The position numbers and the translations under genes were made by a program. A stretch of DNA of 64,000 nt from Geosiphon pyriformis uo1 (taxonomy: Eukaryota > Fungi > Glomeromycota): contig JAAOMT010000200.1 of assembly GCA_016748015.1 (NCBI GenBank), positions 618,984-682,983 of the forward strand. The letters run 5' to 3'. The notes beneath the pieces are model-generated. The model made no database searches, was not told where the DNA came from, and worked only from the letters and a program-made list of their open reading frames with translations. The stretch's first letter is position 1; each line of letters begins with the position of its first letter. Shown piece after piece: positions 35,571 to 60,803 of the stretch.

Positions 35571-36819
35571 TTAGACCTCTGTATGAATCCCTCTTGGCAA
35601 TTTTTTCTCATCATTCAACTCGGTGCTGCCATCACTCTCGGCAGATAATCTGCTTAGTGGGGAGGCCCCTGAAGGTGCAGTCGCACGTGTTTCATCTGCT
35701 ATGCTGTTTTTCGTTTTATAGTAATTAGCAGTTTGCTTGAGGCGTTTAGCATAACGTGAGACCACTGATGCGAAATATAGCTAGTTAAAAAAATTAATTA
35801 CTTGCTTGCTTTGCACGCATGTGTTATCAAATAGTGCAAAAAGCTTACCGAAAATGCGACTGTTAGAATTTCACTAACAGTTAAGATAACGGTATAAAGA
35901 CGGATGAACTTTACACATGTTTCGTCAATTGTTTTTTCATCTTGTGGGGTGGTGATGTTTCGGTTGTTGGGATCTGTAGCATTATTCAATGGGACAGTTG
36001 GATGGGATCCAATGGATAATGAAGAATCAGAAGTCACATTGTTTGACTGAGATGAGGTACCACCGTTTCCACTGTTTGATTGTGTTTGGGAACTATTGTT
36101 TTGCTGCTGCTGTAGCCCTTGTCCATTATCATTATTTGGTTGTTGTCCAGTTAACTGACGTTTCCATGGTCGAACCCATGAACTGGAAGGGTCATAATCA
36201 ACTCCATTTGCCAGTTGTTCGTGTAGTTTATCGACACATAGAGATTTCAAAGTTCCATGATTTTGAAACAAGTAAACAAGCTCCGAAATAGCGATCACTG
36301 CCGTCAAAAGCGCCATTACTGTAATAAAGATTGAAAAAATTCGGACAAGTTTTTCACTTTTCTGAAAATCATCAATGGACCGGTTAAAATTAAAGCTGAA
36401 ATCGTGAACAAGTTCAAAAAAAGCCGAAAATTATATTTACCACGATGGCGCCAACGAGACCACCATAACTCACTAATGCTTTGATTGTATAACCTATACC
36501 AAGTAAAAGGCACACGGTATTCGAAATATAGTACACACCTGTTTTTAACATTATATTAAAAATCAACTTTGATTAGCATTTCTTTAGGCAGGTAGTCGAT
36601 GTATATAAAATAGAGATAATGATCCTCACCGTAGGAATGTGCCGTGAAAGATCCAAAAGCATTCGCTGTACTCAAAATCTTTGATAATCAAGATCAAATA
36701 GATCAAGCATCAAACACAATTTTCGGGCAAGAATAAAGATGATTTCAGTTAAGAAAAAACAGAGAGGAAACTCACCGCCGTCAGAAGAGCAATCACTATC
36801 GTACCGGTACGAAGGCTGA

Positions 36820-36854
<35 letters not shown>

Positions 36855-36959
36855 TATTATAGAATTCGTAAGAAAAAAGTAAGCAATTGTTTTTTTATTG
36901 AATTAATTATTTTTTGCGTGTTTCTAAGAACCTCACCAGAAACAGCACCGCTCAACCAT
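35571..36959 (-). CDS. Four-transmembrane protein (~312 aa; LAPTM/tetraspan-like topology), 6 exons
   Basis: Exons 36959-36937, 36821-36776, 36678-36630, 36538-36441, 36361-35849 and 35780-35571, all GT-AG and in phase. N-terminus MVERCCFCISLRTGTIVIALL; four hydrophobic segments; Cys pair flanking a large N/Q/S-rich loop; ends YFASVVSRYAKRL plus a cytosolic tail. Confidence 0.85.
36823..36852. repeat. (TA)n microsatellite at the 3' end of intron 1 of the 4-TM gene
   Basis: About 15 TA units directly next to the AG acceptor. Confidence 0.9.
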
Positions 36960-38699
36960 AGTCGTTTGAAAGTCTTTTGAACCTCGAGGAACTATTATTC
37001 TCAAGAAATACCTTTAGTCTAGGGTGAAGGCAAGTTTTTCTAAGCAAAAATAACAGGTTAGATAATAAGTTGAGGATAAGGTGGGATTTCCTCAAGATGT
37101 TAAGTCATTCTCGAGTGCCAAATAGAGCCTTGAAAGAGAGATCTCAGGAGTCTCAATGCAGACAGAATTTTTGAAGGCAAGGCAAGGCAAGGAAAAAGAC
37201 ATGGGAAAACAACACGAACCTCAAAACCGTACCAGCAGACGTAGATAAAATATCATGAAAAATAGCTTCGTTAGGGGTCCAAAGCCTCAGCCAAAAAAAT
37301 ACCTTTATTTTATAAGCGCGACGTGGCTCAACACCCCTTGCCAAAAAATCCCCAGGTATATACATGCATATATGATATTTAAACATAATAGTGAACTATC
37401 TGATTATCTGTAATGTGCAAGAGAAAGCTGAGTACGCTCAACTTGCTCATTCGTAACGTGTCAAATAATACAAACATATGACTATTTATTGTGGCTTAGC
37501 GTTGGTAAGCCAAAAGCACTTGCAGCGGGCAAAGCAATTTGCCTCGCTCATATTTAGTAACTAATATTTGTTTGGGGAAAAAAAAAGCCGCACGAGTTTT
37601 ACGAAGACATGAAAATTTTGGGCTTTGATTCAAAACCAAAGATGAACTATCCTCAAAAGAAAAAAAATTATCAAAGCTTTCAAGTCGCGTCATCTGAAAA
37701 GATTATTATTTTTCAGTTTACTTTTGATCCAAATATTTATTCTGGGGATCATGGTAGACAACAAAAATTTGGCAAGATCTTTTTTAGTATTAGATCCTAG
37801 ATATTTGAGTAACATGAACAAACTTTAAATGTTGAGCTTTTATTAGAACTGTCGTGCGGGGCCAAAAATGGCAATTCAAGAAATTAGATTTGCCTCCTTT
37901 ATCAATGCATGCATTTTGTGCTAGTTTATTCAAACACTAAACATGCTCCTGGAATACTATTAAAAAATTAAAAATTAAAAATATATATAGGTGGCTCATC
38001 TACAATACTGATTTTACAGATTATAATATTTTATTACTTAATTTAGACAGTTTAAACTTATTTTTATCAGTGGATGTAAGAAAAATGATTGCTCTTTATT
38101 TCATAGCTCGGAAACGATTTAAAGGCAAAGAGTTAGGATCGATGTATCGAAAGCAAATTAGTGAGTCAAAAGTCTAACAGCAAAAGGGGAAAAAAAAGGA
38201 ATTGAAACTTTTGATAATATTTAACAAACCAAAGTAAAAACCCATTTATAAATGTGAAATTTTCGGATAATCACGTTCGTAATAAAGTTTTGAAAGAAGA
38301 CAACGACCAAAGTCAGATATAATTGTAAGAATAAAGTTTACTTATAGAAAGCAATAAATTTTCATGTCATAGAAGCCAGTTGTAAATTTTTTAAAATTCT
38401 ATCTTTTTATTATACACATAATTTTGGGGGAATCACTCAAAATAAAGTAAAATATGATGCTCTTTAATTTATATAATTTGTTTTTGAAAACTCAATAATA
38501 AAGTTATGTAATTTATTTGCTTTTTTTAGTTTTTAGTTTTTTTCATCTTGGAAAATTTTAGGACTCTATATGTTTTGAAGATCTAAGTTAATGTTGTCTT
38601 ATGAAAACCATAAATGCTATATATTTATAAACAATATTTATATGTTTATATAGATAAATTTATAACATATATCATATGGAATTATCTGAAAACGTTATT

Positions 38700-38990
38700 A
38701 AAATCTTTTTTCACGCTTGATATTCTGGTTCAAATGAACAACTTGATGAGACAGGTTCACAATGTCTTACGAGAGATTTTCAGAGAAATCTTTTCTGACA
38801 ATCCAAAATTAACTTTTCTACTCAAAACTTTAGATGTTTGTTCTAATGATCCAAAATTCAGAGACTCAGTTTGGGAAATTACACATGAACTGCTAATTTG
38901 AAAGAATGAAATCTGTAAAAGCAAAATGTTTTTGACTGATCAAAATTTCACTATTTCCATATATGAGTATGTTACAGAAATTGAGGTAAT
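38700..38990 (+). pseudogene. Possible decayed exon or gene fragment of unknown family
   Basis: Protein-like frame 'MNNLMRQVHNVLREIF...DSVWEITHELLI*KNEICK...VTEIE' with one internal TGA, ending at a GAG|GTAAT donor. CpG-poor. Confidence 0.3.
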
Positions 38991-39892
38991 ATCTTTATTA
39001 TAAAAAAAAAATTTTTTGATGTTTAAAATTCTTTTGGAAGAGATAACAACACTGAAAATAATAAGGTCTTTATATTTTAAAAATTTATTAATTTAAAAAG
39101 AATTTTTTTTAATTAAATAAAAAGAATTTTTTCATTTTGAAAACATAATGTGTAAGTTTTTAACCTTGTTTTTTCTTTCCAAAATGCTTCTAGTGGTAAT
39201 TCAATTTTTGGGTGTTATATTATATTAATTTCATATCCCCGCTCAAAATTGTGACGTTGAGGGATTGAATTTAAAATTCATTTCCTACCGAAGCCAAATT
39301 TTGAATCACAGGTCTTTGCGTATGTGAGAGCAACTAATACATAAGGGAGGAATTCAAAAATATACCCGGACATCATACTGTAGACACTCTTCATCTTGCG
39401 GAACTGAATTCATCTTCAAAAAAAAAAAACCGTGATCAGCCTTTTTTCTTTGACACTTGTTAGTAGCTTCAGAACTTCCTGGACTGCTTCTGAATCCTTT
39501 TAAACTCTACAAGATTACCAATCGACTTGAGTCAAGCTAGAAACTAGAAGTGTATATTCTGAAATGACAGCAGGAAACTGATGCATCGACACGATCTCCT
39601 GTACAAAGCCCTGTTGTAGGAATAGAAAATCACAGGTACAAAAAAAAAAAGGATCATTACTTGATTTGTCGTTGCTTCCGACTGATCTAAGTGAATGTCG
39701 GGTCAAAAAGGAACTTACGTGAGAAAAAATTCTTACTCAACGTCATATTCGATGATCTTAGCGTCGATCCCTTCTGCATGATGTGATCACGCGCCTTAAA
39801 CTAAACGCCTGATAATATAGTCACTATAATGGGAATATGGCAAGTTTTCTTTCCCAAAGTACAACTTTTTAAAACCAAAGAATTTATCAAAA

Positions 39893-40844
39893 ATGTTTCA
39901 CGAGTACGATCACTCGACCAAAAATAATGTGTATCGCCGTCGTTCACATGCTCAAACTGAACCCGAAGCTCGTAGTATATATGGAACTTCAGCCGCCCAC
40001 CGAATACGACGTCATTCCCCACCTCCTCCCCACGCGCACCACCAACCTATCTCGAAATTCAACTCCGAGTTTTGGATGCAGGTAACAATATATACACTTG
40101 AAAGAAGAATTGATCGAATTAAAGGGCCGTCATTACTTTTTCCTATGTGGGTGAAATTTGTTGGCTTTTTACACTAGGATTTTAGAAAAAACGTAATGGA
40201 AACACTTTTCAAAGAAGAAAGGTTCAAGGCTTTCCAAAAACGTCGCAACATAAATGAAGTAATTGATAATATGATGGATACAGAAGATGATGAATATGAT
40301 TGGGTTGAACAGCAAAAGGTAGCCTATTTTAGGTGGTTGAGGTTTGTTTGTCATGGGTATGAGAATTTTTTTTTTTTTTATACAATCCATTCCAATTTCA
40401 TCAGATCGCACAATCAAACCATATTTTGCAATTTTTCGGCGGGCCTACTTATTTTACCGCCACTGGATATCAGCCTCTACATAGTCAAGTAAAATCATTC
40501 TTTAACAATCTTCACTTATGTAAAATTTATTTCAACTGCAGTTAATTCAAGAAGTGGTTCAGAATCAGTGGGCACAGCACCAGATGTTTCCTTCTCCCGC
40601 TTATCAACAATGGGTTCAACAGCAGCAGCAGCAACACCTACAACACCAACAACAAGAAATTGCTTCTTCTAACCAATCCTCACAACAAACTTTAGAGGCA
40701 CAGCAATTGGAGTGGCAACATCAAATAGAACAGCAGCAACAAGCTTTCCTTACTAATTTGCCAATTGAAATTGCTAATGCCGTTCAATCAAAGAATTTAC
40801 CTCCTGAATTTTATCAATTTCGTGAGCGCCGTGAAGAACCCTAG
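39893..40844 (+). CDS. Hypothetical protein (~210 aa) with a Gln-rich C-terminus, 3 exons
   Basis: Exons 39893-40081, 40178-40318 and 40542-40844; phase-0 GT-AG introns join three ORF-track pieces into one frame. Confidence 0.8.
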
Positions 40845-41836
40845 AAAAGATTGAACCTTATTTATCACAATGAATGTCTTATGATGATTAAGACTAAGCA
40901 AAAGGTAAAATTGTGACTATGGTAATTGGATCATTTTATCTTATTATTTGTTTGAATTGCAATAGCAATCTTTGTATTTTTTTGTATATTTTCTTTTACA
41001 TTCTTAAATATCAGCTTCTAGTAAATTTACCTTCGTTTTTAAATTTGGCCAATCGTAAAATATTTGCTAAATGGGTGACCCTGTAAGTCGGTATAAATCA
41101 AAGCATCTGTAACTTTCCCTGGTAAACCAGACTATTTTCCAAAAATTCCAAAAATATCCCGAACAAAAAATTTCAAGACGCGTAATTATTGGAATGTAAA
41201 TGTAATCCTTATCTTTTTGAAGTAAAATAAATGTTCTTTTTTAAATTGTTTATATTGAAAAAATATAATTTTGCCATAACTTTTTATATATTCGCAAAAT
41301 TCAAAGAAATTATTTCAAAATTAATTTAAACTTAATTGTAGGAATTTATTTATTAACTTACAATATTAAAATTTTTCGAAAAATAAAAATTTGGTTTTAA
41401 AATAATAATGTCAAAAAATTTATTTAATATTAATTTCAATATTGGAATTTACACAAATTTCATTATTATGCATAATGAATATTCAATAACAAATTTTTTG
41501 ATGTTTTGAATATCACAGACTATATTGATATATTGCTATAGTCTCATTGAGTACCTTTTGTATAACACTTCATGATTCTATAACTTTTGCTCGATTTCTA
41601 TCAATCAAGTATGTGCATTGGCTAGAAATGCAAAGAGTTTGAAAAACGGTGTCCAAGAATTTTATTATATATCGGAAAATCCAACCATTTTGCCAAAATT
41701 GATTATTAAAATATATATTAGTATTATGTGTAAAGGAAAGGAACGAAAAAAAACATGGTGTTAAAATTTCGCATTCTTATAAATAAATCAAGTGTATAGT
41801 ATGTGATATAATAAATTATCAAAATTCATCAGGGCT

Positions 41837-42589
41837 CTATTTGCTGAAATTAAAAAGATTCTTAAGTTGCTTCCAAAAATTCTTCTTTTTTACTTTCTTG
41901 TCTTCAGTCTTGTTTTCTTCACTTGAGCCACCAGCAACCTCAGGTCGTGGACTTTCCGTGGTGGACACAGGAGTTGATCCAGGAGCGGTTTCTTCTTTTG
42001 TTGCGAGAGGTTTATCTTCATTACCAGGGATAACGGTTGGTGTCTGGGGGAGAGCTTTTTCTTCAGAGGGGCTGATCACTTCTTCCTTGGCTGGAGGTGG
42101 AGGGGCTACATCTGAAACAACTTCCTCTTCCTTTTTTCCTTCTTCTGCTTTAATTTCGACTGGTTCTGCTGTTTCTGTTATGTTAGTTGAAGTATCAGGG
42201 GCTTGAGAAGCCAGAGAGCTTTCGGTAACTGCTGTTATGGGTTCAGATTTTACATCAGACTTTTCGTCTTCTTCCTCGACTTCTTTTTTAATTTCTTCAT
42301 TCTCAGCTGTTTTTCTCTCTTCGCTTTTATCAACATCAGGTGAGCTTGAAATGTCTACCTTATTTTCAACTGCTTTCTCGGTAGGTTTTGCCTCTTTGGC
42401 ATCTGTCACCTCTTGGGCAACTGTCAGTTCTTGGGATGCCGCTTCAGGCTCTTGAACTTCGTTCGTCGTTGATGATTCTGAGGGTAAGGGAACCTCTTCA
42501 GGAACAACTGAAGGAACAGTATGTTCAGGGAAATCTAGTGAAGGGGTAACCACCGTAGTTACGATTGTCCCAGCCTCAAGCTCAGACAT
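41837..42589 (-). CDS. Acidic, intrinsically disordered protein (250 aa) with a basic amphipathic C-terminus
   Basis: Single uninterrupted ORF rich in E/P/T/S/K, ending KKVKKKNFWKQLKNLFNFSK. Confidence 0.85.
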   Translation of the reverse strand: MSELEAGTIVTTVVTPSLDFPEHTVPSVVPEEVPLPSESSTTNEVQEPEAASQELTVAQEVTDAKEAKPTEKAVENKVDISSSPDVDKSEERKTAENEEIKKEVEEEDEKSDVKSEPITAVTESSLASQAPDTSTNITETAEPVEIKAEEGKKEEEVVSDVAPPPPAKEEVISPSEEKALPQTPTVIPGNEDKPLATKEETAPGSTPVSTTESPRPEVAGGSSEENKTEDKKVKKKNFWKQLKNLFNFSK

Positions 42590-43609
42590 AATGATGAAAG
42601 GATAGAAGTTGGAGGTGATTTAAGAAATAGAGGGTATATTTCGGGTATATTTCTGAGAAACAACTTAAGTAAATAATCCATTTTTTAAGCTTTTTAAATG
42701 AAATCGCGGCAGGAGTGATTGTACGACGGTGTATAGAACGCCAACCGGAGGCTCTATACTGTAACAAGTGAATATGGGTCACATGTAGTGGATTAACGAT
42801 CGACAGCATTAACTTAATTTCATTGAATTCATTTAACACGCGTCATGTCATTTTTGTGTTCCTTGACTTGGAGCTTATGATTTTACTTGCTCAAAGGAAA
42901 AGATGCATCCACTCCACTTTTAACATTCAAATGTTCATTTTAAAAGCTTTACCGCATCTGCCTCCATGGAAAAGATCTAGAAGAAAGGACCGTCGACTTC
43001 CGTGTGACTCAACCATCTAGAATGTTAATTTCTCCGCTTCCTGGAATGAAAACCGAGTGGTTAAAAACTGACAGATACGTACACTTTCTTTGCTTCTTTT
43101 AAAGGACCAGGAACCTTGACTTATTCCAAGGCCTGCGAAATAGACTGCAACATACGGGTGTAATCCCAGTGTCGGGTTTCCTGAGCCCGTCGCAACATAC
43201 CAGGCTTTCTGGGAAAAAAAAGTAAGAAAGGCAAGGTTTTGTTGAGAATTATGAGTTATAAAAAGGCAGAGAAGATAGGTCTAGTAGGGAGATATACTGT
43301 AAGATCTTTTTCAATGTTTGTCATAAATTATTCGAATGAAATTTTCTATTAGTAGGAATATGTCCTTGATAGAAGGAAGGAGTTGAAAGAGTATGCCAAC
43401 TTCCTCAAGAATAAAGAAACAAAAACTCGGGTATAATAGTAGTATGGACTCGGATAACAGCGAAAATGTGACAACAAAAGTGCCTCTTCATAACTCATCC
43501 GAATCGAATATAAGGGTAAAGGAATCAAATGCATCGAATTATCTATAATGATAAAGTGACAATAATCTCTTGTCAATGTTCTTGTACAATCCTCACAAAG
43601 ATCCCATTG

Positions 43610-44518
43610 GCATCTAATTACCACTAGTTGGCAGACATTATCATGTGTTGTGCCCTTCGAAGCTCAATCTAGGAAAACGTATTGGGGAGTCAGTCTAACC
43701 TGTTCAGGGCCCTTTTTCCTGCTTATCAGATACTTTAGACACGCGTGACCTTAGTGATTGATACTTTTTTTTGTTGATTGGGATAATGGGTTCCTCGTAG
43801 TTCAGCTGGAAATCATCGATGTGTCGGACCGTGATTATCTTTTGATCTATTTGACGGAAGAGAACATCTCAATATGTTCGCCTCTGCAGAAAATAGCTGG
43901 AAGATTTTCTGGACCCTGCAACCGAAAGGTGTTCGTGGGGCTGTCAACCAGAACATTCATTTTGTGCCGTGGAATCTGAGGAGCCAAGTCTTGACAATGA
44001 TGAAAAATGGACCTTCTCAAGGAAGAAGAGTACAGGCGTACTGATGTCTGTTATGTCTTTGATCTGTTGCAATATTGGTAAGCTTGTTACATGTACGGCA
44101 CTACTCACCAAATGAATGTTCTGGTTGACGGCCTCATGAACACCTTTCGGTGGCTCCAGAAAAACTTCAGCTATTTTGTGCAGAGGCGAACATATTGAGA
44201 TCTAGGAATTCCTCTTTCGTCAAATAGGTCATGGTCCAACATATCGATGATTTCCAGCTGATTGCTCTATTAAATATCGGAGTTCAACTATGAGAAACCT
44301 GTATCCCGGCCACTTATCAAGGTCACCTGACAAAATATTTGATAGGCAGGAAAAAGAGGCCTTGGACAACCAATTTGGTTTAGGCCGACTCCCTAATAAC
44401 TTCGTTTGTCGATCCGAGTGTTTGGGTAAGACGCTTTACTAAATTGTGCTTCTTCGAAGAATGTTCAGCTTGTGACTAGGCATGTTAAGATTTGGCCACT
44501 CTTTTCAGGTAATTGTGC
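43610..44518 (+). ncRNA. Candidate long hairpin RNA (imperfect ~900-nt inverted repeat, ~120-nt loop)
   Basis: Arms pair in colinear blocks, e.g. 43921-43962 with 44110-44151 (42 bp, 3 G-U, no mismatch), 43866-43888 with 44179-44201 (23 bp perfect) and 43802-43835 with 44228-44261. The inverted repeat is directly visible; transcription and strand are inferred. Confidence 0.65.
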
Positions 44519-45211
44519 GTCTCTTCGTTTTTATACAATTCAAAATCGCATGAATTAATTTGATTAAAGACAATGATGAATAGAATCTCATTGAATTAGT
44601 ATTTATTCCACAACGAACTATTTACTTGGACACAAGACATTGTTTTAAGCTTGGTAACAAGTGGCTGGTTATGAAAGTTACTTAAACTTGATGAAGATCC
44701 TGTTCTGCCTTGCAACTCCACCCTCCTCAAAAATCTTCACCTTGAAATTGAACACTAATTTGTTCCCCAAGTACTTCGAAATGTCAGACCCATTCCTCAA
44801 TAGGCACTCCATACTTTAAAATCTGTTCAATTCTGGTCGAAACTGCGATTTGTATAAAGGCCTAAGATGCCATTGCTCGGGAAGTTATTTTAAAGTAGAA
44901 ATCCCGGTTACTCGTTGACTCCGCTTCCACCTATAAAGCAGATGCCAAACGTCCACGTTATAGGTGAAACAAAAGACAACGGGACGGTAGAGAAAAGGAG
45001 GGAAATAGTCGTAACGTTAATGCAATAAGAATTCGCGTACTCGTATGTCTGCGGGTCGAGAAAATTTTTTTCTAAAATCACGCCTGCGGCTATTCATTTA
45101 CACGGGTTATATACCAATTTTAACTTCATCATATAAGAATCTCTAATCATCCCAAGAATAAGACAATAAAATATCTGCAATTTTTGAAGTTTGGAAGGAA
45201 ATTGTTTAAAT

Positions 45212-46902
45212 TTATTTTAAAAGGACTGTGATGCCATCATCTGATACCAAAGCTGCATTCTTCCGAAACTGCTTTTTTAGATGTTCAGTAGAATATTTAT
45301 TCCGCTCATTGTTCATGATCTTCTGGATCACTAATTCTTCAAGCCGATGAAAGGAAAGCTCTTTGGTCTGAAATGATATTTTCGAAATGTTAACCAATAC
45401 TGTTATTAGGTACCAAATCAATTCCATAGAACATCTACCTTTGCAGTAACGAAGCTTTCGCGAATCATAGCTGGCACAACAATCGCGAAATCCAATTCCT
45501 CCTGAGCCACTTTTGACTCGACCTTCTTGTCTTTGAAATCAAGCTTGGTTTTTTTGTTTACAGCTTTCTCTTCATTCCTCTTTATAGAATCCTCAGACTC
45601 AAAATCCGAACCATCTTTTTTAGTCTTGAATGACTTGGTTTTGAGAACTCGAGTAGTAGAAGACTCCTCTATAACATCACTATCCGAGTTTTCAGACAAA
45701 GAAAGAGTCTCCAAAATAGCTTCAGCTTTACGTTTCATATTTCCATTATGAATCTTTGGGACCTCTTTTTGATGGCTGTCGATATTATCGGAATTTTCAA
45801 TGACTGCTATTTTGGTCTCGGTGAATACATTTCTGGAGAGGTCTTTCTTTTGCTTCTTATGGGACTCTTTGGAAATATTATCAATCGGAACAGTGTCAAA
45901 TGACGAGGAATGATGATCCGATGAGCGTTTCTTCGAACCTGACTTTTTGGCATTAAGGGGTTCAACGATGGTTTCAATCGGCTTGTTGGGGACAAGGTTT
46001 TCCGGCTTTTCGGCTTTTTTATTGTCGCGTTTCTTTTTGTTTTTTTTACTACCCTTTTTTTGATCAGAATTATTAGGAGCAACCGAAAAAAGATTCTTTG
46101 AGGCCTCTTTCTTATGGTCCTTTCCGGATTCTAAAAGTTTGATTTGAATCTCTTTCGCGTCAATCTTATTATAATCTATCTGTTTTTCGGAATACCCCGA
46201 ATTCTGTTCTTGGGAAGATATTGTTACGCCAGAGACTTTCTCGGGATTATTTTCATATATCTTGGAACCTTTTTCGAATAATGTTTGATCAAGAGAGTGC
46301 CTTTTATTTTTGTCTCTTCCGGCCTTGTCCTTTGCTTCTTTTTCAATTTGATGACTATTGTTTTCAGCTTTTTCTTCCATATTTTTTTTTTTGTTAATCT
46401 TAGGACTGGCTTTTTCAAGAAAAATGGTTCCATCCATTTTTCCATTCTTCTCTTTTTTATTGACATTGCCGCTTTTTCCATCCCCTTCAAAATTATTGAC
46501 CTTGATCTGATTCTCATAATCTTTACTTTTTTTCTGTTTATCAAAATGTAAAAACAATCATATCTAACGATGTTTTGAAACTTTGGCCAAATTCAAAGCT
46601 GTAAGAAAATAAACGGTACTAACCTTCTTACCTTTATACAAGGCTTTTTGATATTTCTCGGCCTCTGTTACACAGGCTGTATGAAACCTATAATCGCCCC
46701 CTAAGAAAGTAGTAGAACAATCTATACAAGTAAACTGAGCTTGGACACACCGAGCCACGTGTGCGTCAAGCTTTGGTTTTTTAAGGGTCTCTTTTTAAGA
46801 AGGGTTATAATAAGTAAGACACCACAAATAACCTTAGTTTTACCCAAGTGAGAGGGACAAGGTTGAAATACCTTGACAAGTATCACAGACAAAAGACACC
46901 AT
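45212..46902 (-). CDS. LYAR: LYAR-type C2HC zinc-finger nucleolar protein (~482 aa; yeast YCR087C-A/human LYAR family), 4 exons
   Basis: Exons 46902-46872, 46790-46624, 46533-45439 and 45367-45212 give MVSFVCDTCQETLKKPKLDAHVARC...FTCIDCSTTF...YRFHTACVTEAEKY, the zf-LYAR signature, followed by a Lys-rich region. Confidence 0.93.
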
Positions 46903-47064
46903 TTACTTGGTCTGCTTTTCAAAGAGAATAGAGTGGGGAAAAGTTTGACGAAGATTATTGGTTACTGCTATGGATATGATCAGCAATGCTATCCGATGAT
47001 TTCGGAGATTAATATTAGTTCCAGTTTTTTCCGTTCCAAACGTCTCTACCAATTCATTAGAATC
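46903..47064. promoter_or_regulatory. Compact bidirectional promoter region between LYAR and PEX5
   Basis: Divergent start codons separated by only 162 bp. Confidence 0.7.
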
Positions 47065-49871
47065 ATGTCTCTGCAACAACTGCTCTCTGGTGGCTCTGAT
47101 TGTGGTCAGAACAACTCTATGGCTGGTCTGAGGAAGCAGTTTTCACAAGATGAATCACTAAAAAAGGTGCGAATAAAGCACAAATCTCTTACAATACGTA
47201 GAAAGCCAATTTCATTTTATCACTTTCGGTTTATAGGATAAGTTCCTACATAACCCAGCTGGAGAAGGTTCTTCTCGAGGGGTAACTTCAGGTTTTATCC
47301 AGCTGATGTCGAGTTGGTTTCTCTGGTTCTTCCAAAAGCTAAAGTTCCTATCACGTTCATTAGTCGTTTAGAATGACAAGTAGCATAGGTCTCTTGCAGA
47401 AGGACGAAGTTGGTACCTTCCAGTTCCATTTGTTAAAATACTACACTTTTAAATCGGCTAAGTTTAATATCGGTTTTTTGCTAGTTCGAAGAATTTTTTG
47501 CTGGAAGTGACCAAGCAAACCCTACCAAATCATTCCAATTTAATCAAATGGGCAAAGAGCTGAATGAAATTCAGGGTCATAAAAAGCTAGACTGGGTTAA
47601 TGAGTTTCAAAATCGGTCTCAATCTACACCGTTCATCTCTTTGCCAATTTCCGAATATGACCATTTTGACAAAATTTTCGAACAGGGTCGCAATGGAGGT
47701 ATGCACTTCACTTTCAAAAAATCGTAATAACATCACACATCAATCTGAATTTTTAACTTGATTTAAAGAAAACTGGGTGCAAGGATTTTCCGAGTCTCAA
47801 AACGTTTCTCCCAATCGTGATGGAGAAATGTTACCGGAAGAACGTGCCGCGTTTGAGACAGCATTTGATGAAGCTAAAAGAGGTACAACAAGGAACGTTC
47901 TTTGCGTTATCATCCTTTCTAAAAAAAATTTAATATGAACTTCATTTGTAGGTGTTGAATGGCAAACTGAGTTTATTCATCAGAGTGGGTCATGGGTGAA
48001 AGAATCTCAAAAAGAGCTTGATTCGGTAGTGATCTCTAATGCCACGAAAACAAAGCTAGCAATAACCGCTGGCGCATTATTGGATGTAGTTGAAGGAGAA
48101 ACAAACCCAAAATTCCAAAATTCTGATTTTTTAAAACTTATGAAAAACTTTCGAGATCAAAAGATGGTTATTGAACGAAATAAAGTGGTAGAACAAAAGG
48201 TCCCTGTCTCACCAATATGGGCCCCTGAATTCAACTTACAACAAAAGTCCTCGTGGGCTTCCGAGTTCAATGAACAGAGATCAATGAATTTTAATCCGCT
48301 AATTAGTTCAACTGATAACGGTTGGAAATCGGAATTCCTAATGACTCTAGGTGAAAAAGCTTCCAGTTCTGCTATTAATCAAAATTTTGTGCTTCAAAAA
48401 AAAAGATTTGACGAGGAATTTGAAAAACAATGGAATAAAAATGAAACGCGAAACCGTGTTCTACAAGTTAAAAATCCAAATAATTGGTCTTCTGAATTTT
48501 TAGGATCTACCGGCGTTGAAGATTTTTCAAAATCAGCAATGGATTTTGAAAGAGAAAGTTATAATAAAGAACTTGAAAAAAAATGGAACGAATACGCTAT
48601 AAGGGAAAATTTCCTTCCACTTCCTGATTTGTCGGAATTGAAAGAATTTGACAGAAAATTAGGCCCAACAACTCAGGGTGAAGTTGTCAAACATCAATTC
48701 AATTCCCTTAATTATGCTCAAGAATTTACTAGAATTGATCAAGCAGCAGAAAGCCAAGAAAGGAGAGAGTGGAATGATATGCAAAACGATTGGGAAAAAT
48801 ATGAACCCCATAACACGGGCTATATCACAAGCTTTCATGATTATGACAATTACATATTCCAATCGAAAAATCCATGTTTTGATATAGGCAACCAAATAAT
48901 TAACCAAAATATATATCAGGGACATTTGGGAGAATCAATTTTGGCCTTAGAAGCAACTGTTCAAATAGATTCGCAAAATGCTAGCGCATGGTACCAATTG
49001 GGTATTAGGCAACAGGAGAACGAGCAAGAAACCCAAGCGATTTTAGCTTTGCGAAAAGCTGTTTCTGTCGATCCTACATTATCAGATGCATGGTTGGCCC
49101 TTGCCGTCTCGTACAGTAACAAAGACTTACTAGCACATCTATACGATGCATTAGAATCTTGGGTTAAAACACATGATCGGTACTTTCAGTTACTTGTACA
49201 AGAACGAAGTGAGAGTAATTTATCGAGTCGTCACCGCCTTCTTACAAATGCCCTTCTGGAAGCAGCGATCTCAAACCCTGGCAAAAATCTTGATCCCGAT
49301 GTACAAATTGGCTTAGGTGTATTATTTAATGTTGGAAAAGAGTATCATAAAGCTGCTGACTGTTTCCAAGCTGCCCTTACAATGCGACCCAATGTAAGGA
49401 GTAATGTTTATTTATTCTCAGCTTTTATAATATATTAATAAATTATTATTATTATTATTATTCTTGTTGTTATTATGATTATGATTTAAGGATTTTCTTT
49501 TGTGGAATAAATTGGGAGCAACATTAGTAAATGCCGGTGAATACGAAAAAGCAATAAACGCTTATTTCAATGTGCTTGAAATAAACCCGGCATATATTCG
49601 AGCACGTTATAATCTTGCCCTGAGCTGCCAAAGTTTAAAACTCTACAAAGAAGCAGCTGATCACCTTTTAGCGGCGTTGACATTACAAAATGAAATTTCT
49701 CTGCAAAAGGGTTGGAATGATGCAGAAGTTAGCAAACCATTTATGAACCGCATAACTACAAATCTTTGGGATTCACTAAAGGTCTGTTGCGAATCAATGC
49801 AGCGTGAAGATTTGGTTGCAAAATGTGTAGGACTAGACCTTGAGGCATTTAGGTCCGATTTCGACTTTTAG
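47065..49871 (+). CDS. PEX5: Peroxisomal targeting signal receptor Pex5 (long form with Pex7-binding motif), ~7 exons
   Basis: N-terminal conserved Cys (SDCGQNN), many WxxxF/Y motifs, 'KFQNSDFLKLM', and TPR region 'ALEATVQ...AWYQLG..QQENE...DPDVQIGLGVLF...LWNKLGATL...YIRARYNL'. Exons approx. 47065-47166, 47237-47281, 47364-47408, 47485-47698, 47769-47882, 47952-49393, 49491-49871; exon 3/4 borders are least certain. Confidence 0.93.
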
Positions 49872-50110
49872 TCAGACGGTGGGCAGATGATCCCACCTTA
49901 GGATTTGTTGAAAGTCTTTATACATTTTGAATATGAACTGCTTGTACCTTTCTTATTAGATTGATGTGCTAGGGTGTCCCTGTTAAAATTTAAAATATGT
50001 TATTTTTAAATTGCAAATTTCGTTCAATATGAGATATGAGCGTTGTTTATGTTAGTTTATTAATCCGAAAAAATATAAACTGGTAACTCAATGTGGTTTT
50101 CCGATATTTA

Positions 50111-50305
50111 GAGTCATCACGAATCAGTAATAGTCACCACGAATCAATAATAGTCACCACGAATCAATAATAGTCACCGCGACTCAAAAGTATATCTGTC
50201 ATTTCATCACTTCGAGTCATTGCTAACCATTACGAGTCATCTGTAGTCAATAAGACTCATTATTGAGTCATGTTTAATTTTCTTCGAAAATTCGAGTCAT
50301 CACAA
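50111..50305. repeat. 20-bp tandem repeat array with dispersed GAGTCA motifs
   Basis: TAGTCACCACGAATCAATAA x ~4 at 50111-50190, then degenerate units to ~50305. Confidence 0.85.
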
Positions 50306-51246
50306 ATCAACTATGATAAGAGAATTTGGAAAACCCAGCATGCTGGTAGAAATAATATTGGTTAGAAGGAGCTCACTTGCACAAATTCAAGAGCCTTTTG
50401 ATTATTGAGAGAAGGGTCTGGTCACTGCTTTATCTTCCCTCAAAGGCTGAAAGAGGGATTTGCTTTCTGTATTATACAGAGATAAATTCAAATAGCAGCA
50501 AATTTCTAAAATAGTTAATCCACGTGATAAACACAAGCCAAATCAAAGAAACCAAAGCAATCTTTTGAATTCAAAATGTGAGATTAAAAAATTAACATTC
50601 TCTGATGTTTTTTCCAAACGATTGAGTTTATTACCAGAAAGTTTTTTTTCAAAATTGTTCAATTTATTTATTATTTTTTAATTAACCAATGAAACAGTGT
50701 TTACTGAATTGTGGGAAGCTAGATAATTGAATTAAAATTGTGTTTACTTGAGCAATCTTTCTAATGATATTTTAAGGCTAATTCATGTTGTAAAATTTAC
50801 TTTTTCTTTAATCTTTTATGACTTTTCAACTTTGAAGAAACAATGTCCAAATTTCTTTCTCATGGAAAACTCTTCACACATCGAATTGAAATAGAAACCA
50901 CCAATATCTTGTTGAAAGAGCTTGCCATGAAATTAAGATTTCATCAAAATCATCCAGAATCCCTCTTTATGTTTTTTAAAACAAAGACTACTGAAAAGGG
51001 AATCATTCAAATTGACTCAAAAAAAAGTTATTCTTTTCAAAAGATACTTGACAATTGCTAAATGTGTCATTAACTACCAATATTTTCCCAAACAGGGATT
51101 CAAATTAAGTCATCCTTAGCTTTTTAGCTCTGCTTGAACACTCAATTTAATGGATTCAAATCATAGTAAATGAAAAAAAAAAGGTGTATTATCATTTTAT
51201 ACATGATTTTATGAGACCTAAGTTATGTACAATCAAACCTAAGATA

Positions 51247-52358
51247 ATCCAACCAATAAAGATACAATACATTGGCAAGTTCACAGAACTGAAATTTTAA
51301 CAATTTTCAGACCAAATTATTTTGATAATACTGGATTACTATCTAGATATTACAGATAGTACTTAGACTTCGATGGAGCTCAGTTTTGAGGAGGAGATTA
51401 TGTTATCAGTAGAAATTTAAGATATTAGTTAGCATAAAATTACTCTTATAATTTCCATTATTAATTAGTATATATTATCATTTCAAATTATCACTTATTA
51501 TCTCATCAAATTATCCGAATTACTAATCAATTAATAATCTGATTTATACAATACACAAATATGATGATCAGATCATGCAATACTCCAAATCATGTAACAT
51601 TTAAGAATTCACTGAAATTTGTAAAATTTTGTGAAATAATTTAATAGTTCACCAAAATCCTAAATAGTTTGTAGAAATAACTTGTAGTTCATTAAAATGT
51701 ATCTTTAGTTTGTCAAAACCATAGCAGAAAAAAAGTTCAAGTTCATAGACTAGTCCTATAACAAGTTGTATAAAAGAAGAGCTTCTCTTTTTGAGAAAAT
51801 ATATCTTTAGTTAGAATCAATTATTTTTTATATATCTTTACAAAAGTAATAAAAATTAAATACTTCAAAAACCCAAATTCCTTAATTATTTACACTTAAA
51901 ATTCTCTTAAATTCTAACTAATGTTTTGAAATTGATTAGCTACCAATTTTAAGAATTCGTTAGTGATTTCAGGCCTGAACAGAAGACAATTCTTTTAACA
52001 AAATTCCTTTTCTTTTACATTTCTTTTATTTATTTATTTTCTTATTATTATCATTAGAGTAGCCTATAGATAAAATTTCTGTAAAAAAGTTGACTTTTAT
52101 AGCAAAGTAACTACACATTTTAGAAAGCTTTCAGATGAGCATTTTCTGAAAAAGAGTTGACTTTCATTGTAAAGTAACTATACAAATAACTGGTATGAAA
52201 TTGGCCATTTTATTTATAAGCCCAGCAGTTCAAATTATAGAAGATAATTTGAAGATAAATTCAGTTATCAGATATTTACTAACTTTTAATAATTAAAAAT
52301 TAACAGCAAAATAACATCAATAACATACAGAAAAAGAGACCAAAAACTCTCAATAACA
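51247..52358 (+). mobile_element. Truncated Gypsy of the element 2 family: ORF3 end, polypurine tract and 3' LTR (51401-52358)
   Basis: Homologous to 17625-19632; GAGGAGGAGATTA|TGTTATCAG...AATAACA, followed by ATGG and LINE ORF1 sequence. Confidence 0.9.
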
Positions 52359-54125
52359 ATGGCTAACACCCAGAGTTAAGCTGGAAAACCATTAGTTCAA
52401 ATGTATCTAATCTTTTAGCTAACTTATCAACTTGTTCTACAAGATTAGTAAGACTGTATTTAAGAGCAGTAAACATATTATTTACTTTTACAGATATTAA
52501 TAAAGAAGATTTAACATTCAAAGATAAACCAATGTCAAAAAAAACTAAAAATACAACATAAATAGGAACACCATCAGCAATTTGTGTTCATATTTTACCA
52601 CCAAAAAAAACTGGATAAGCAATAAACACCTGTTTTTTCTTATATATACTAGCTAATTATACTTAATCTTAAAAAGTAACCAGTTTTATACTACAACTAC
52701 TCAAATTTTTATCAAATAAAACACATATCAAAAATATAATTAAATTGTTTATACTAAGCACAAACAGCCAAAAACATAACAGCCCAATATAAATACACAT
52801 TTTTAAAAACTAAAATAGAACTAATGACAGTTTTTTTTAAAGTTTTATTAAAAAAACAAATAATAATACATCTGTTATGCTTATATATTTCCAAATTATG
52901 GCCAATTAAACAAGTTTTTCTACTATATAATGCCAAAAAATCAAAAACTTATGTGCAATAGTATTAACTAATAAAATATACAGCAAAGTTTAATAACAAT
53001 CTCTAAATATTTATGTTTATTTATTTTTAACAGCTTTAACTACATAAACAGAATTTTTTTCCATAAATAATAACTATTTAACTGTAACCAAATCAGCAAT
53101 TTTAGCAGACTTAAACTTAATTAAAACTTTTTGTTAAAGACTAATTAGTTGTATTTTAATAAAAACAATCTTATTAAATCTAAAAAGAGCCAATTTTACA
53201 GCCAATTTGAAAAGATTAACTGAAATTTCTTTGATAATCACTTTTTAATTGATATAATTATTTATTTTTTTAATATTATTATTCATTAAAATTTTTTTAT
53301 AGAAAGCTATTTTCTTGGTCTTGTTTAAATTTAATTCAGATATAAAATATAATCTAATAATTTCGGAAAATTTTAAGAGAATAAACACTCTCCAAAACTA
53401 TTAACATAATAAAATATTTTTTTTACAGTTATTAACTTATTATTAGTAGTTTTATTAAACACTATAAAAAGCTTAATATTTAATGTAAAAGATTTAATTA
53501 AATTAAAACTCTGTTTTTCTAAAACATATAATTTAATTAATAGCAACTGTTTAAAGTTAACAAATTTGGGAAATAGAAATACCAAAACATTATTACTATT
53601 ATTCAAGTTCTTAAAAAAAATCTTTGGTGGACAACCTAAAATATATATTTTAATGTATATTTTTTTGGCATAATTTTTTTTATTAACTTTCAAAGCATCC
53701 AAGTTAGCATAACTAATTTTTTTAGTAACTGTATTTTTTATGTTGCTTGTTTTACTAACCACTTTATTATTCCAAGACTTTTTATGTTCAATGTTACCAA
53801 ATTTTATATCTGTAAGACTAAGAAAGCTAACAGATATATTAACTAAATTATTATTTGTTTTAAGTTTTATTAATTTCTTAGGCTTTTTATAAAAAACCAT
53901 AAAAATAAACACTTTTAACATACTTTTTTTTATGCCAAAACAGATTTTTAAATCAGCCAAACTAAAATCAAAATCATTAACAGAAAAATTCACTAGATTT
54001 ATAACAATAAATAAAAGTATATTAAAAAAAATAACTGAAAAAACATTAGATAAAAAAAATAAAAAACTATTTTTTTAACAATTTAATACTCTTATTATAA
54101 TCAAAAAATCAATAAAAAAAGAGTT
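52359..54125 (-). mobile_element. LINE copy C, 5' UTR/ORF1 remnant, very AT-eroded
   Basis: Colinear with LINE B 32010-33830 (ATGGCTAACA..., 'KKIFY', 'CLIGHN...NRC'). Confidence 0.85.
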
Positions 54126-55034
54126 TATAATTTATTATTTTATATTATTTAATATTTTTATTAATTATTGTATATTATTTTGTATTATTATATATTATTA
54201 TATATTAAATTATGTTTTTTCTTATAATTAATTAGTTTTTTATTTGAATAATAATACTTAATTCAAAATTTGTAAATTTAAAAAATTTGTTAAAAATGCT
54301 ATTAATAATTATAAATTATTTTACATAAATTATTTTTTTTAATTTAAATTTTTTTAAAAGTTTTTAAATTATATAAAAATAATAATATATAGTTTTAATA
54401 AAATTTTTTTTAAATAAGTTGGCTTTAAATTTTAATTTTTTTTTAATCAACAAATTTTATTTGTTATACAGACTTTTAAATATGAAATTAAATTAGATTC
54501 TATAATTAATTATATATTGCAAATTGTTAAAACTAAGTAAAAAAATTGCTTGTTTAAAATAATTATTTTTAAAATTATATTAACAAAAAATTTAATATTT
54601 GATTATATTTTTTTTAACCAAATTTGAACAGACTTTTAGTTAACAAAAATTTTTTAAATAACAGATTGATTATTTTTAATTTAAATTGTATTATTAATAA
54701 ATATATTAATTACTAAATAAAAAATTATATAAGTTTTAATTTTTGTTTTAACAACAAACTTGATATTAATTTTATATTTATTTAAACTTTTATGTTTTTT
54801 AATCTTACATAAAAAAAATTATACAAATTATAAGAAATTAATTTAAGCTATTATATATTTTGTAATTATTTGTTAAATTAAAATTTATTAAAATTTTGTT
54901 AATTTTATTATTATAAATACAACCAAAAAATTTGATAAATTTTTTGCATATTTTAATTTTAAATAAACTGTTTGTTAAATAGTAATAGCTTATTAAATTA
55001 TAAAATTTTCACATATTTTATAAAATTAATTACA

Positions 55035-58000
55035 AAAAAAAAACTTCTTTCTTTTGTTTATCCTAAATTCCCAAAAATAAGCCAAAATATTTTTTGAAAG
55101 AAGTTTTTTTCTGTTTTCATCATTCAGCATACTAATTCCAAACTGTTTGTGCTTGATTATGAGGCTATCATTGGCCCTAGTATTGCAGTTCTAAACAAGT
55201 CTATTATGGAGCCTAGCTTTAATATTGGTGTCAAATCTGCTGAGTTCAGAAAGAAGAGAAAAGGTGGTGTTTTGGAGAATAATATTGGTAATAGAAAATT
55301 TGCTGCTGCTAAAGTATCAAATAGTTGTTCTTGGGATTCTGAAACCAGTGATACTACTGAATCTGATAGTGTGGATATAGAAAAAGAATGTTTAATTGAG
55401 AAAACCAGCTTTGATTATGAAGATAGTAGAGCTTTTGCTGAAGAGAATTCAGAGCAAATACTTAAAAGTTTGAAGATTCTTACCAAGAAGGCACTTGGAA
55501 AGCCATTGGGGAAAATTAACTTCTTGGATGATGATATTGATAATATATTTTTGGACAAACCTGTGGTTTTCCCTCCCCCTCAAAAGAACTTGGTCAATGT
55601 TTCTGTTAGGAAGTTTTTTGCTTTGGACATTAGTTTGGATAATGTTGTTAAAAATTCTGTTCAGGAAAAGCTTGTGGTTGTCAAAAAATTATTTTCAAGA
55701 ATCAATGGTTTTGGGAGGACTTCTATCTCCTCAAAATTTGCTGGAATCATCAAGGCGACATTCACTTCTGAATCAAGTTTGGCACAGGCTTCTAAAAAGA
55801 CTGAAGAAGTGAAGATCTTGGTAAACTCTAATCTCAAAAAATCATCTGGGCATTCAGATCAGGCTGTGGTATTAAAAAAAATTTCTGTTGGAACATCAAC
55901 TGAGGCTGTACACACTGCGCTATCTAGTTTTGGTGTGGTAGTGTCAATCAAAATGCAGTTAGTAAATTTGTGGCAGAAGGCTATAATTGAATTTAGTAAG
56001 AGTGAACAGACTAATTTAATCACAGCTTGTTGATCTATCCTAATTGGGAAGGATGCTGTGCATGTAACCAGGGCTGATCAAAACAAAGAATCATGAAACA
56101 TGAAAGATCAACATAGGGCTTTGCTCTATACTCTGCCAATAGGAATGACTGTTTATGACATTTGGAATTATATTGGCTCTGTAGTGGAAAAACATATGTA
56201 ATAGATTGTCATTCTGTTATGTATGCTTGAGCCAGATGTGCTGTTGTTTGTTTTAAATTGGCTGATTCCTTTGAATGCTGTTATGAAAACTACTTTAGTT
56301 TTAAGGAATGTAAATATGCATTGGTCTCCTTTGGGTTTTTCTAAATGTGCTGAGTGTGAGAAATTGAGTCATATATCTTTGGGCTGTGCTGTGGATGGGA
56401 ATCTCTCCTCTGAGAAACCTTCTTGCAGACCTTTTTCAGACATAGATAAAAGCAGATTGGCAACCATTTATGCCAAGCATTCAGTTCTGATTGCTTGTTC
56501 TGTTGCTTTTGGTAGAGTTTCTTGGGCAAAAATTGCTGGTAGAAATGTTTTTTCCCCTTTCCTTGTGCGGAAAGTGTCAGTCAATTCTGGCTTCTCTTCG
56601 GAGATGAAGCCTACCTTCCTAATATGAGTGATGTTGAAAAAAAGTTTGCTGTTTTGGAAAGCAGTTTTACCAGTTTCATGAAACAAATTAGTGAGTTGGC
56701 TAAGAGGTTGGACTCATTAATGCTGACAGTTTTCTAGCCTAGCCTTGAATGTCAACTGCCAGTGACCCCTCCCATCACAGGATCGGATGGATGATGTAGT
56801 GATGGGAAAGGGTTTGGGTGAGGCTACAAGTGGTAAAACTGCTATGACTTCGGAATCTTCTGCTTCTTTTGAAGTAAAAAGATTGGAAAACATATTGGAA
56901 GAACTTTCTGCTTTGGTGTTATAGGGCTGTTTTCTTGGTATATTTTAATTGTTAATCTCCCATTTTAATTGCAATCAGTTTCTTATGAGTTTCTCTATTT
57001 TATGTGTTGGATATTAATGATAATGTACTGAAAGTTTTTTCTTAATGTTGTGATGTAAGTCTTCTCTTTAATTCTAGTTGTCTTTGTATGTTGTGTATTT
57101 TTTCCCAGAGACTAATCTGAAATCTACCCACTGTTTGGGATTTTTTCTGAGGCTATCCTTGCAATTGTCTAATGTGTTTTTCTAATCTAGAAACACGAAA
57201 TGTTAATGGTCTTTTCGCGATTTCCCCAAGTATATAATAAAGCTTTTTTAATTTAATTAGTAACCACATAAATAATCTTGATCAGAGATTATTCTTCCAA
57301 AGGGTTCAAAGATGGAATGATAGTTTTATTTGCTAAAAAGAGTATGTGAATTTTATTGTTAATCTCATAATTGTAATGTTCATTCAATTTATTATTTTTT
57401 TTATTAATTATTTTTGAATAAGATTTTATTTAGATATTTGTTGCTTTTAGTTGAAGCTTGTTCTATTCTTCATCATTAAAAACTATTGTATATATATATA
57501 ATTATTGTTTTACAAAATAATGTCTTGTAATACTCTATTTCTGTTATTTCTAAATAATGCTTGCTGCTATTGTGAAATAGTGCTTACTACTTTTGCATGA
57601 TAGTGCTTGCTGCTATTGTAAAATAGTACTTGCTGTTATTTGTAAATTATTTCTTTTTTATAACTTGTTGCTGTGCTATTTCATGATTGGCTAATTTATA
57701 TTATTTATAATTCTTATTAAATTCTTGAACTGTAACATTGGTTCTAAGTCTTACAGCAAGATTTGATGGTTCAATTTTGGCTGGCAGTGCATTTTCCAAA
57801 CCTTTTTCTCAATGACCAGTCTAGTGTGGAAAATTGCCACATGTAATGTTAGAGGTTTGAATAATCCTGTGAAACAGGATAATGTAATTTGTTGGCATAA
57901 AGAGATAAACAATTTGATTTCTATTGTTACTGAGACTAAGTTGAAGGGCAAGATCTGCCCATAGATCATGAATAAATTTGATGGTGTCTGGGTTTTCACT

Positions 58001-60200: not shown

Positions 60201-60359
60201 ATAATAATAATTACAATTTTTAATTTTTTTTTTAAAATATTTTTTATTATTAAATTTATTACAAAAAATTAAGTCAAAATAATCTTTAAAGCCAAAAAAT
60301 TATTATTATAAAAAAAATTGATTAAAAAATATTTTAAAAAGTATTTTTTTTTTATTATA

Positions 60360-60803
60360 TTTTATGAGTGAGGTCCAAACACTACCTAGTATAATACATT
60401 AACAACTGATCTAAATTAGACATGAATTATGTATTTTTTACATGCAACCAGTCACTCAGGCTGATCAGAACTACACTAAGTGCCTATATGTACTAAGATT
60501 GAATCCCCAACATCTGAGAAAAACAAATAAAACTTACAAAATCCAAAACCAATACTGATTGCTTCAGCAATATTCAGCAACTTAACAACACCTGCAAAAA
60601 GCTCCACAGAAAGCTCTATAACCAAAACTGGAACTAAACTGTCACGTAGTATTATTTTACTTTTCTCTATATAAGCATGATGTTTAGTGCAAACCAACCA
60701 AACTTCATCTTTAAAAGCAAGACACAAGTTATGTACAAATTCCATAACCTTCTGACCAGCTATTTTGGCACCTCCAAAAACAGACATAGCTTCCTGAAGC
60801 CAT
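60360..60803 (-). mobile_element. LINE copy E, 3' end, interrupted by Gypsy element 3
   Basis: Same 3' UTR and ORF2 C-terminus ('FAGVVKLL.IAEA..I.FGF') as copies A, B and D; tail-to-tail with copy D. Confidence 0.88.

Follow-up and report, generated by a model that had tools for sequence, protein, structure and literature searches.

In the fungus Geosiphon pyriformis, the DNA that separates two neighbouring genes contains a single imperfect inverted repeat of 0.75–1 kb (43540–44572 in the window, by which we mean the whole 64,000-nucleotide stretch that was analysed), and where its two arms differ by a transition the difference is far more often G-U than A-C when the + strand is read as RNA. 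Selection that maintained a hairpin RNA read from the + strand would be expected to leave such an excess of G-U. The reading that we favour, tentatively and at a little under an even chance, is that the repeat is a + strand long-hairpin RNA locus and likely a Dicer substrate. Geosiphon is related to the mycorrhizal fungi and diverged early. The repeat, if real, would be a precursor of endo-siRNAs of the long-hairpin type, a kind of locus that we did not find described in the literature for this lineage.

Layout and predicted fold of the inverted repeat

A first-pass annotation made from the letters of the DNA had described a colinear fold-back at this locus, and both a repeat search and a local alignment recovered it there (Table 1). 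The local alignment of the two core arms contains 266 aligned positions, which divide into 234 Watson-Crick pairs, 15 G-U pairs on the + strand, 2 A-C oppositions on the + strand and 15 transversions. The arms are 88% Watson-Crick, and counting G-U raises the pairable fraction on the + strand to 93.6%; gap columns make up 62 of the 328 columns of this alignment, or about 19%. The repeat search returned seven colinear arm pairs between 43706 and 44362. Global alignment misplaces one block (43778–43802/44284–44309), and we therefore also made a block-wise count that takes the pairing of the first-pass annotation there; it gives 231 Watson-Crick pairs, 17 G-U, 3 A-C and 8 transversions. The loop proved somewhat longer than the approximately 120 nt previously estimated. 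An assembly or amplification fold-back artefact is ruled out by the roughly 12% divergence of the arms and by their indels.

Table 1. Positions in the window of the inverted repeat, its paired segments and its neighbouring genes.
Feature	Position	Strand	Paired with	Details
Left arm, core hairpin	43675–43966	+	44106–44407 (aligned to its reverse complement)	292 nt, GC 43%
Right arm, core hairpin	44106–44407	+		302 nt, GC 42%
Terminal loop	43967–44105	+		139 nt, GC 42%; small local stem-loops in the MFE structure
Outer left flank	43540–43674	+	44437–44572	weak, gapped complementarity
Outer right flank	44408–44572	+	43540–43674	weakly complementary
Arm pair (repeat search)	43918–43966		44106–44154	49 nt, 90% complementarity
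Arm pair (repeat search)	43866–43899		44168–44201	34 nt, 97% complementarity
Arm pair (repeat search)	43802–43834		44229–44261	33 nt, 91% complementarity
Arm pair (repeat search)	43706–43736		44332–44362	
Arm pair (repeat search)	43843–43862		44212–44231	
Longest uninterrupted helix	43921–43962	+	44110–44151	42 bp including 3 G-U; + strand MFE
Helix	43866–43888	+	44179–44201	23 bp, no G-U, no mismatch
Helix	43802–43824	+	44239–44261	23 bp, 1 G-U
Helix	43712–43732	+	44336–44356	21 bp, 2 G-U
Upstream neighbour, 250-aa acidic ORF	41837–42589	-		no Pfam family; start toward the hairpin
Downstream neighbour, LYAR-type zinc-finger gene	45212–46758	-		converges on the hairpin

Outside the core the pairing weakens. 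The first-pass annotation had traced a weaker outer pairing to 43610/44518, and we see it to about 43540/44572, where the outer flanks reach a local alignment score of 160; shuffled sequences score 119 on average (sd 15), and 4 of 300 score as high. It fades gradually, from 43675 to 43540 on one side and from 44407 to 44572 on the other, and sharp termini are absent; since the ends are undefined, a target-site duplication cannot be called. The outer flanks are probably what is left of the ends of the original inverted duplication, which, to judge from pairing over this distance, probably had arms closer to 0.5 kb each and was eroded from its ends inward. Pairing is also poor in a middle section (43737–43801 and its partner).

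The repeat lies inside a 2.8-kb gap between two - strand genes. The downstream neighbour carries a zf-LYAR domain at 46567–46758 (Pfam PF08790, E 9e-15), followed by lysine-rich exons down to about 45212–45418. A + strand hairpin transcript would thus be divergent from the upstream 250-aa ORF and convergent with the LYAR gene.

Folding of both strands had been suggested by the first-pass annotation, and RNAfold makes the + strand clearly the more stable of the two: the minimum free energy (MFE) is -430.7 kcal/mol on the + strand (z -22.9 against dinucleotide shuffles) and -368.9 kcal/mol on the - strand (z -16.5). The + strand advantage is 55–62 kcal/mol, the core alone giving a gap of -55 kcal/mol, and the core MFE structure contains 29 G-U pairs on the + strand and 8 on the - strand. 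Uninterrupted arm-to-arm helices in the + strand structure measure 42, 23, 23, 21 and 16 bp, and arm-to-arm pairs reach out to 43554/44525. With arms of 292 and 302 nt and a stability far above that of shuffled sequence, the locus has the structural form of the long imperfect inverted repeats of the hpRNA class.

Strand asymmetry of the differences between the arms

If mutation were symmetric, the transition differences between two arms that were once identical complements should appear as G-U and as A-C on the + strand in equal numbers. The core alignment has 15 G-U against 2 A-C (binomial p = 0.0023) and the helix-block count 17 against 3 (p = 0.0026), these p-values being post hoc, for about 20 sites at a single locus that had been picked by eye, and with a control region of 264 kb. 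The first-pass annotation had counted about 18 against about 5 by eye, which is close to both of these, and the formal test of asymmetry for which it called is significant in both counts, at p of about 0.002–0.003. We repeated the alignment under five scoring schemes, and the splits lay between 6:1 and 22:5. Four of the schemes aligned 263–377 positions and gave 14–22 G-U against 2–5 A-C; the 6:1 split came from a stringent scheme, which aligned only 149 positions (p = 0.125). The mismatch penalty was equal for all types, so that the alignment was unable to favour either kind of transition. When the 17 transition sites were flipped at random between G-U and A-C, the gap of -55 kcal/mol between the strands was reached in 1 of 120 trials.

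The local context of the differences was informative as to their source. Only 2 of the 15 G-U sites fall at CpG and the sites share no dinucleotide context; methyl-CpG deamination and RIP-like mutation were rejected as the source of the G-U differences on these grounds. No consistent T>A or G>C skew is present on the + strand of the unpaired flanks, and the lack of a matching skew counts against a regional, replication-type bias. Neither a poly(A) tract nor a target-site duplication, as for a retro-copied, ADAR-type hyper-edited dsRNA (A>G on one strand), is evident at the locus. Within the helix blocks the differences that break pairing, 8 transversions and 3 A-C, compare with 17 G-U; purifying selection on a + strand duplex predicts that A-C differences, and transversions inside helices, should be scarce next to G-U.

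Other inverted repeats nearby served as controls. A TE-type inverted repeat at 59945–60600, 16 kb away and the sole control of ordinary base complexity, is symmetric (21:15). The remaining palindromes of the 264-kb control region, most of them extremely AT-rich (GC 7–28%), lean toward G-U as well when pooled (88:58), and because of this lean the contrast between the hairpin and the pooled palindromes reaches only p = 0.046; against a 60:40 null the hairpin gives p = 0.016.

A strand bias of C>T or A>G that is tied to transcription would produce an identical pattern without selection, and this brings us to the rival account that survives best, a neutral local inverted duplication (made, for example, by a replication template switch) whose asymmetry is due to chance or to mutation. 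We consider it quite possible, although we would put it well below an even chance. In its chance version the asymmetry is one outcome among the many inverted repeats examined; in its mutational version C>T or A>G changes accumulated on the non-template strand of read-through transcription, which implies transcription of the + strand and no function. The small number of sites speaks for it (about 20, with p of about 0.003 uncorrected and 0.016 against the 60:40 null), as do the drift-like decay of the outer parts and of the poorly paired middle, an ordinary transition to transversion ratio (20:8), and the fact that no progenitor, target or orthologue was found (below). The observed splits of 15:2 to 17:3 are nonetheless far from the equal split that symmetric mutation predicts, and the flanks carry no matching skew. 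Transcription-associated mutational asymmetries known so far are modest, and an explanation by such asymmetry would still need + sense transcription.

Base composition also bears on this account. The hairpin has a GC content of 43%, its flanks 37%, the repeat-rich stretches of the window 20–31% and the genome about 30%; the observed/expected ratio of CpG is 0.68 in the hairpin and 0.82 in the gene island, whereas the window's repeat-rich flanks have 0.125 and 0.185, so the earlier remark that the repeat keeps its CpGs holds. Such a GC content and such retention of CpG are unexpected for old neutral DNA in this genome. Several of the points that favour neutral duplication also count against the + strand hairpin RNA that we prefer, namely the missing progenitor or target, an asymmetry carried by about 20 sites, and the poorly paired middle.

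RNAi genes, copy number and coding potential

Geosiphon has the genes that a hairpin RNA of this kind would need in order to be processed. Piwi-domain matches occur at no fewer than 10 loci, two of them full-length in open frames of 889 aa; a Dicer-like gene combines two RNase III domains in a single 926-aa open frame; and RdRP is encoded by two genes. A related-locus search found no relative of the fungus's bacterial-type RNase III. Dicer and Argonaute are both present and the helices are well above Dicer length, and a + strand transcript would thus be expected to yield small RNAs.

On the reading that we favour, the locus would have originated in one local inverted duplication of about 0.3–0.5 kb per arm. 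Transcription of the + strand would give an RNA of 0.75–1 kb that folds back into a nearly continuous duplex, in which the five helices listed above are separated by small bulges. After the duplication, G-U differences between the arms would have accumulated while pairing-breaking A-C differences and transversions within helices stayed few, as might be expected if purifying selection on the + strand preserves the RNA duplex and not the DNA palindrome. The Dicer-like RNase III would then cut the duplex into a population of small RNAs to be loaded into Argonautes.

The same fold and strand asymmetry could belong to a structured element with some role other than making small RNAs, acting either as + strand RNA or as DNA. 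It might, for example, offer its duplex to dsRNA-binding proteins, separate the convergent LYAR gene from a divergent promoter as a barrier or terminator, or form a cruciform as DNA. Its site, flanked by the 5' end of one - strand gene and by the 3' end of a second, suits such a role, and the absence of a trans target fits a cis or structural function better than silencing in trans. We nevertheless think it unlikely. A 42-bp helix of perfect and wobble pairs would be expected to be diced where Dicer and Argonautes exist, no known family of such a kind was matched in Rfam, and a role at the DNA level does not predict the difference between G-U and A-C.

The hairpin is single-copy in the 128-Mb assembly: searches with the whole element and three sub-queries, and six-frame searches with two arm ORFs, returned the self-match only, and no other copy of the loop (43967–44105) is present in that assembly. 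In the same search the TE-type repeat at 59945–60600, used as a positive control, gave 1965 first-look candidates. A decayed foldback or MITE-like transposable element surviving as a lone copy is accordingly very unlikely in our estimation. Its long inverted arms and short loop would have the matching shape, and the genome is TE-rich, with a multi-copy inverted-repeat element 16 kb away. Multiple dispersed copies are the mark of such elements, however, and the hairpin has 1 genome-wide candidate against the 1965 of the control; it lacks sharp termini and a transposase, and it differs from the local TEs in keeping its CpGs and from repeat-rich DNA (GC 20–31%) in its higher GC content. The statement in the first-pass annotation that the repeat matches none of the local TEs agrees with a blastn-short comparison of the hairpin with the surrounding 264 kb, in which there was no match of 17 nt or longer.

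A progenitor or target of the arms, which the first-pass annotation had proposed to seek by BLAST, was not found in the 128-Mb assembly by DNA or six-frame protein search, nor in the 264-kb comparison just described; the genome-wide target search used a first-look filter, which targets of about 21 nt could escape. The 23-mer of the helix at 43866–43888 is absent from metagenome, viral and bacterial/archaeal genome collections, and helix-pattern scans (two metagenome, one viral, one bacterial/archaeal) were all empty. Small RNAs with targets outside the fungal nuclear genome, for example in the Nostoc endosymbiont or in a mycovirus, would explain the absence of a target in the nuclear assembly, and Geosiphon is to our knowledge the only fungus with a cyanobacterial endosymbiosis. 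A selected small-RNA gene with targets of this sort seems to us highly improbable; if true, it would be an orphan, wobble-maintained long hairpin RNA in an inter-genomic interaction.

A counterpart in related fungi was likewise not seen. The ORF of the neighbouring PEX5 gene is 84% identical to the Geosiphon pyriformis protein; its next best hit is in Ambispora, whose species are the nearest sequenced relatives, at only 45% protein identity. The first-pass annotation had suggested looking for a syntenic hairpin next to LYAR, and on the Ambispora PEX5 contigs LYAR is not beside PEX5 and matches to the hairpin are at noise level only: in Ambispora gerdemannii a methyltransferase gene lies upstream of PEX5 in place of LYAR, and the Ambispora leptoticha contig reaches only 272 nt upstream of PEX5.

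The earlier judgement that the repeat holds no credible ORF and no transposase is borne out. No ORF in the hairpin exceeds 73 aa, and a search of 5.8 billion proteins returned no homologue for the one that reaches this length, in an arm. Six local ORFs match no Pfam family, ten are absent from an exact index of 15 billion proteins that includes assemblies of sequencing runs, and there is no transposase. An Rfam scan of 41000–47000 at E<=1 returned noise only (GAIT and sR3, E 0.17–0.92); no hammerhead, HDV-like, twister or other ribozyme occurs in 41–47 kb, and there is no tRNA at the locus. Integration of a viral RNA or of a rod-like, viroid-like one, the latter offered by the first-pass annotation as a lesser alternative, would account for the rod shape of the fold and for its one-strand G-U pairs, but we find it hardly credible given the empty ribozyme and Rfam searches, ORFs without relatives, a best-helix 23-mer absent from the viral contig collection, and helices of 20–42 bp with 88% arm identity that resemble a DNA duplication and not a viroid rod.

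Relation to known hairpin loci

Flies, plants and one budding-yeast lineage all have well-documented natural loci that give small RNAs from long hairpins. In Naumovozyma (Saccharomyces) castellii palindromic loci are the main source of siRNAs and give about 74% of siRNA reads (PMC7528652). Like the Geosiphon repeat these are non-coding genomic inverted repeats of a fungus; they are transcribed, and their hairpins are diced to siRNAs of 22–23 nt (PMC7528652). The two cases differ in that the N. castellii loci are defined by sequenced small RNAs together with Dicer and Argonaute genetics, whereas the Geosiphon locus is a candidate defined from its sequence. The Geosiphon lineage (Glomeromycotina) is moreover very distant from N. 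castellii, and its Dicer-like protein has two RNase III domains where the budding-yeast enzyme has a single one (PMC4521922).

Drosophila hpRNA loci share with the Geosiphon locus the form of a long imperfect inverted repeat; their transcripts come from a single strand and enter the siRNA pathway for processing (PMC8728187, PMC10317233). Drosophila hpRNAs are derived from, and silence, identifiable targets, often young selfish genes, and the arms of plant proto-MIR loci likewise come from their targets, whereas the arms of the Geosiphon hairpin were not found to derive from, or to be complementary to, any target gene. The first-pass annotation had regarded richness in G-U as the signature of Drosophila hpRNA and plant inverted-repeat loci. 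This could not be confirmed: the natural-hpRNA literature that we searched did not present G-U enrichment as a hallmark of natural hpRNAs, and the term was found in work on engineered dsRNA and hpRNA (PMC11381321, PMC13527466).

The engineered constructs offer a parallel of their own, since G:U wobble pairs are depicted in hairpin transgene constructs (PMC11381321). In G:U-wobble hpRNA transgenes made for plants the arms are not fully complementary as DNA, but in the RNA read from one strand G:U pairs join them, as they would here. [quoted passage not shown] Those constructs were designed and their target was chosen, whereas the wobbles of the Geosiphon hairpin are natural and any such benefit to it would be conjectural.

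The plant LIRs collected in LIRBase have the same arm-loop architecture and the same proposed route from LIR through hpRNA to siRNA (PMC8728187). For entry LIRBase asks that both arms be >400 nt, that 80% or more of positions match and that indels make up no more than 10%, and its coverage appears to be animals and plants only (PMC8728187). Measured against the three thresholds, the Geosiphon hairpin passes on matches (88%) and falls short on the other two, with core arms of 292 and 302 nt and about 19% gap columns. Its arms exceed 400 nt only if the weak outer pairing is added.

Precursors of fungal milRNAs are short stem-loops with one dominant duplex. The Geosiphon fold-back, at 730–1030 nt and with many helices, is thus hpRNA/siRNA-like and not miRNA-like. 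What fungal milRNAs have in common with our proposal is that they are derived from a hairpin, made by Dicer, loaded into Argonaute and read from the hairpin strand only, the criterion for hairpin small RNAs being that over 80% of reads come from that strand (PMC9757828). The same 2022 re-analysis of fungal hairpin small RNAs concluded that natural long hairpin RNAs still need clear demonstration (PMC9757828).

If it is not confirmed, the locus would be an ordinary decaying inverted duplication. The comparison of G-U with A-C differences needs a genome sequence alone, and could serve to rank the inverted repeats of a whole genome. If the + strand hairpin RNA that we favour is confirmed, it would provide a concrete endogenous RNAi substrate in the Geosiphon lineage, and a natural case in which G-U wobble preserves an RNA duplex while the DNA arms that encode it diverge.

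Inverted repeats in the window and upstream

In the genome search, the 656-nt inverted repeat of the window proves to be one member of a highly abundant family: there were 1965 first-look candidates, of which 40 were scored, and in many copies the match covers just one arm of ~270 nt, at 85–89%. Watson-Crick pairing joins 224 of the 284 aligned positions of its arms, and since arm transitions that keep pairing on the + strand (G-U) and those that break it (A-C) are split 21:15, we regard this repeat as symmetric. It looks like either a pair of copies of a common repeat in inverted orientation or a transposable element of the foldback type. Several long palindromes, which we used purely as controls, lie in DNA of extreme AT content (GC 7–20%) within the 200 kb upstream of the window (C729:418984-618983, on the same contig). 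In the largest of these, + strand G-U and A-C differences are split 35:18; such palindromes are probably of low complexity or derived from transposable elements.

Features of the window, the upstream control DNA and contig C701 of the Geosiphon assembly (G000)
Feature	Location	Strand	Remarks
Q-rich low-complexity ORF	window 40554-40844	+	96 aa
Low-complexity acidic ORF	window 41837-42589	-	250 aa; E/K/P/S/T-rich
Imperfect inverted repeat	window 59945-60600		656 nt; GC 28%; loop 49 nt
Largest AT-rich palindrome	L019:247-1482 = C729:539230-540465		1.2 kb; centre 9 nt
Another AT-rich palindromic stretch	L018:2027-2479		further sites in C729:418984-618983
Bacterial-type (class I) RNase III	L033:1396-2250 (G000:C701)	+	285 aa; no introns; single RNase III domain

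The gene island and its neighbourhood

CpG observed/expected is 0.82 in the 14-kb gene island (window 36000-50000, GC ~35%) but 0.125 and 0.185 in the repeat-rich flanks (window 1-34000 and 50000-64000, GC ~29–30%), and this sharp contrast suggests that in this region the repeats alone are under long-term CpG methylation. A Pfam scan assigned no family to the acidic ORF of the island. The PEX5-LYAR adjacency of Geosiphon is absent from the PEX5 contig of Ambispora gerdemannii (L027), where the upstream neighbour of PEX5 is a Methyltransf_16 gene; the corresponding A. leptoticha contig (L028) stops 272 nt upstream of PEX5. Downstream, both Ambispora species have a gene of 176–192 aa followed by a BTB/SPRY gene.

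A bacterial-type RNase III

The C-terminal third of the Geosiphon class I RNase III looks like a putative dsRNA-binding domain, and no close relative emerged when 185,579 prokaryotic species genomes were searched by pattern. It has been proposed in the literature that Glomeromycotina possess an RNase III of cyanobacterial origin, and the Geosiphon enzyme fits this idea.
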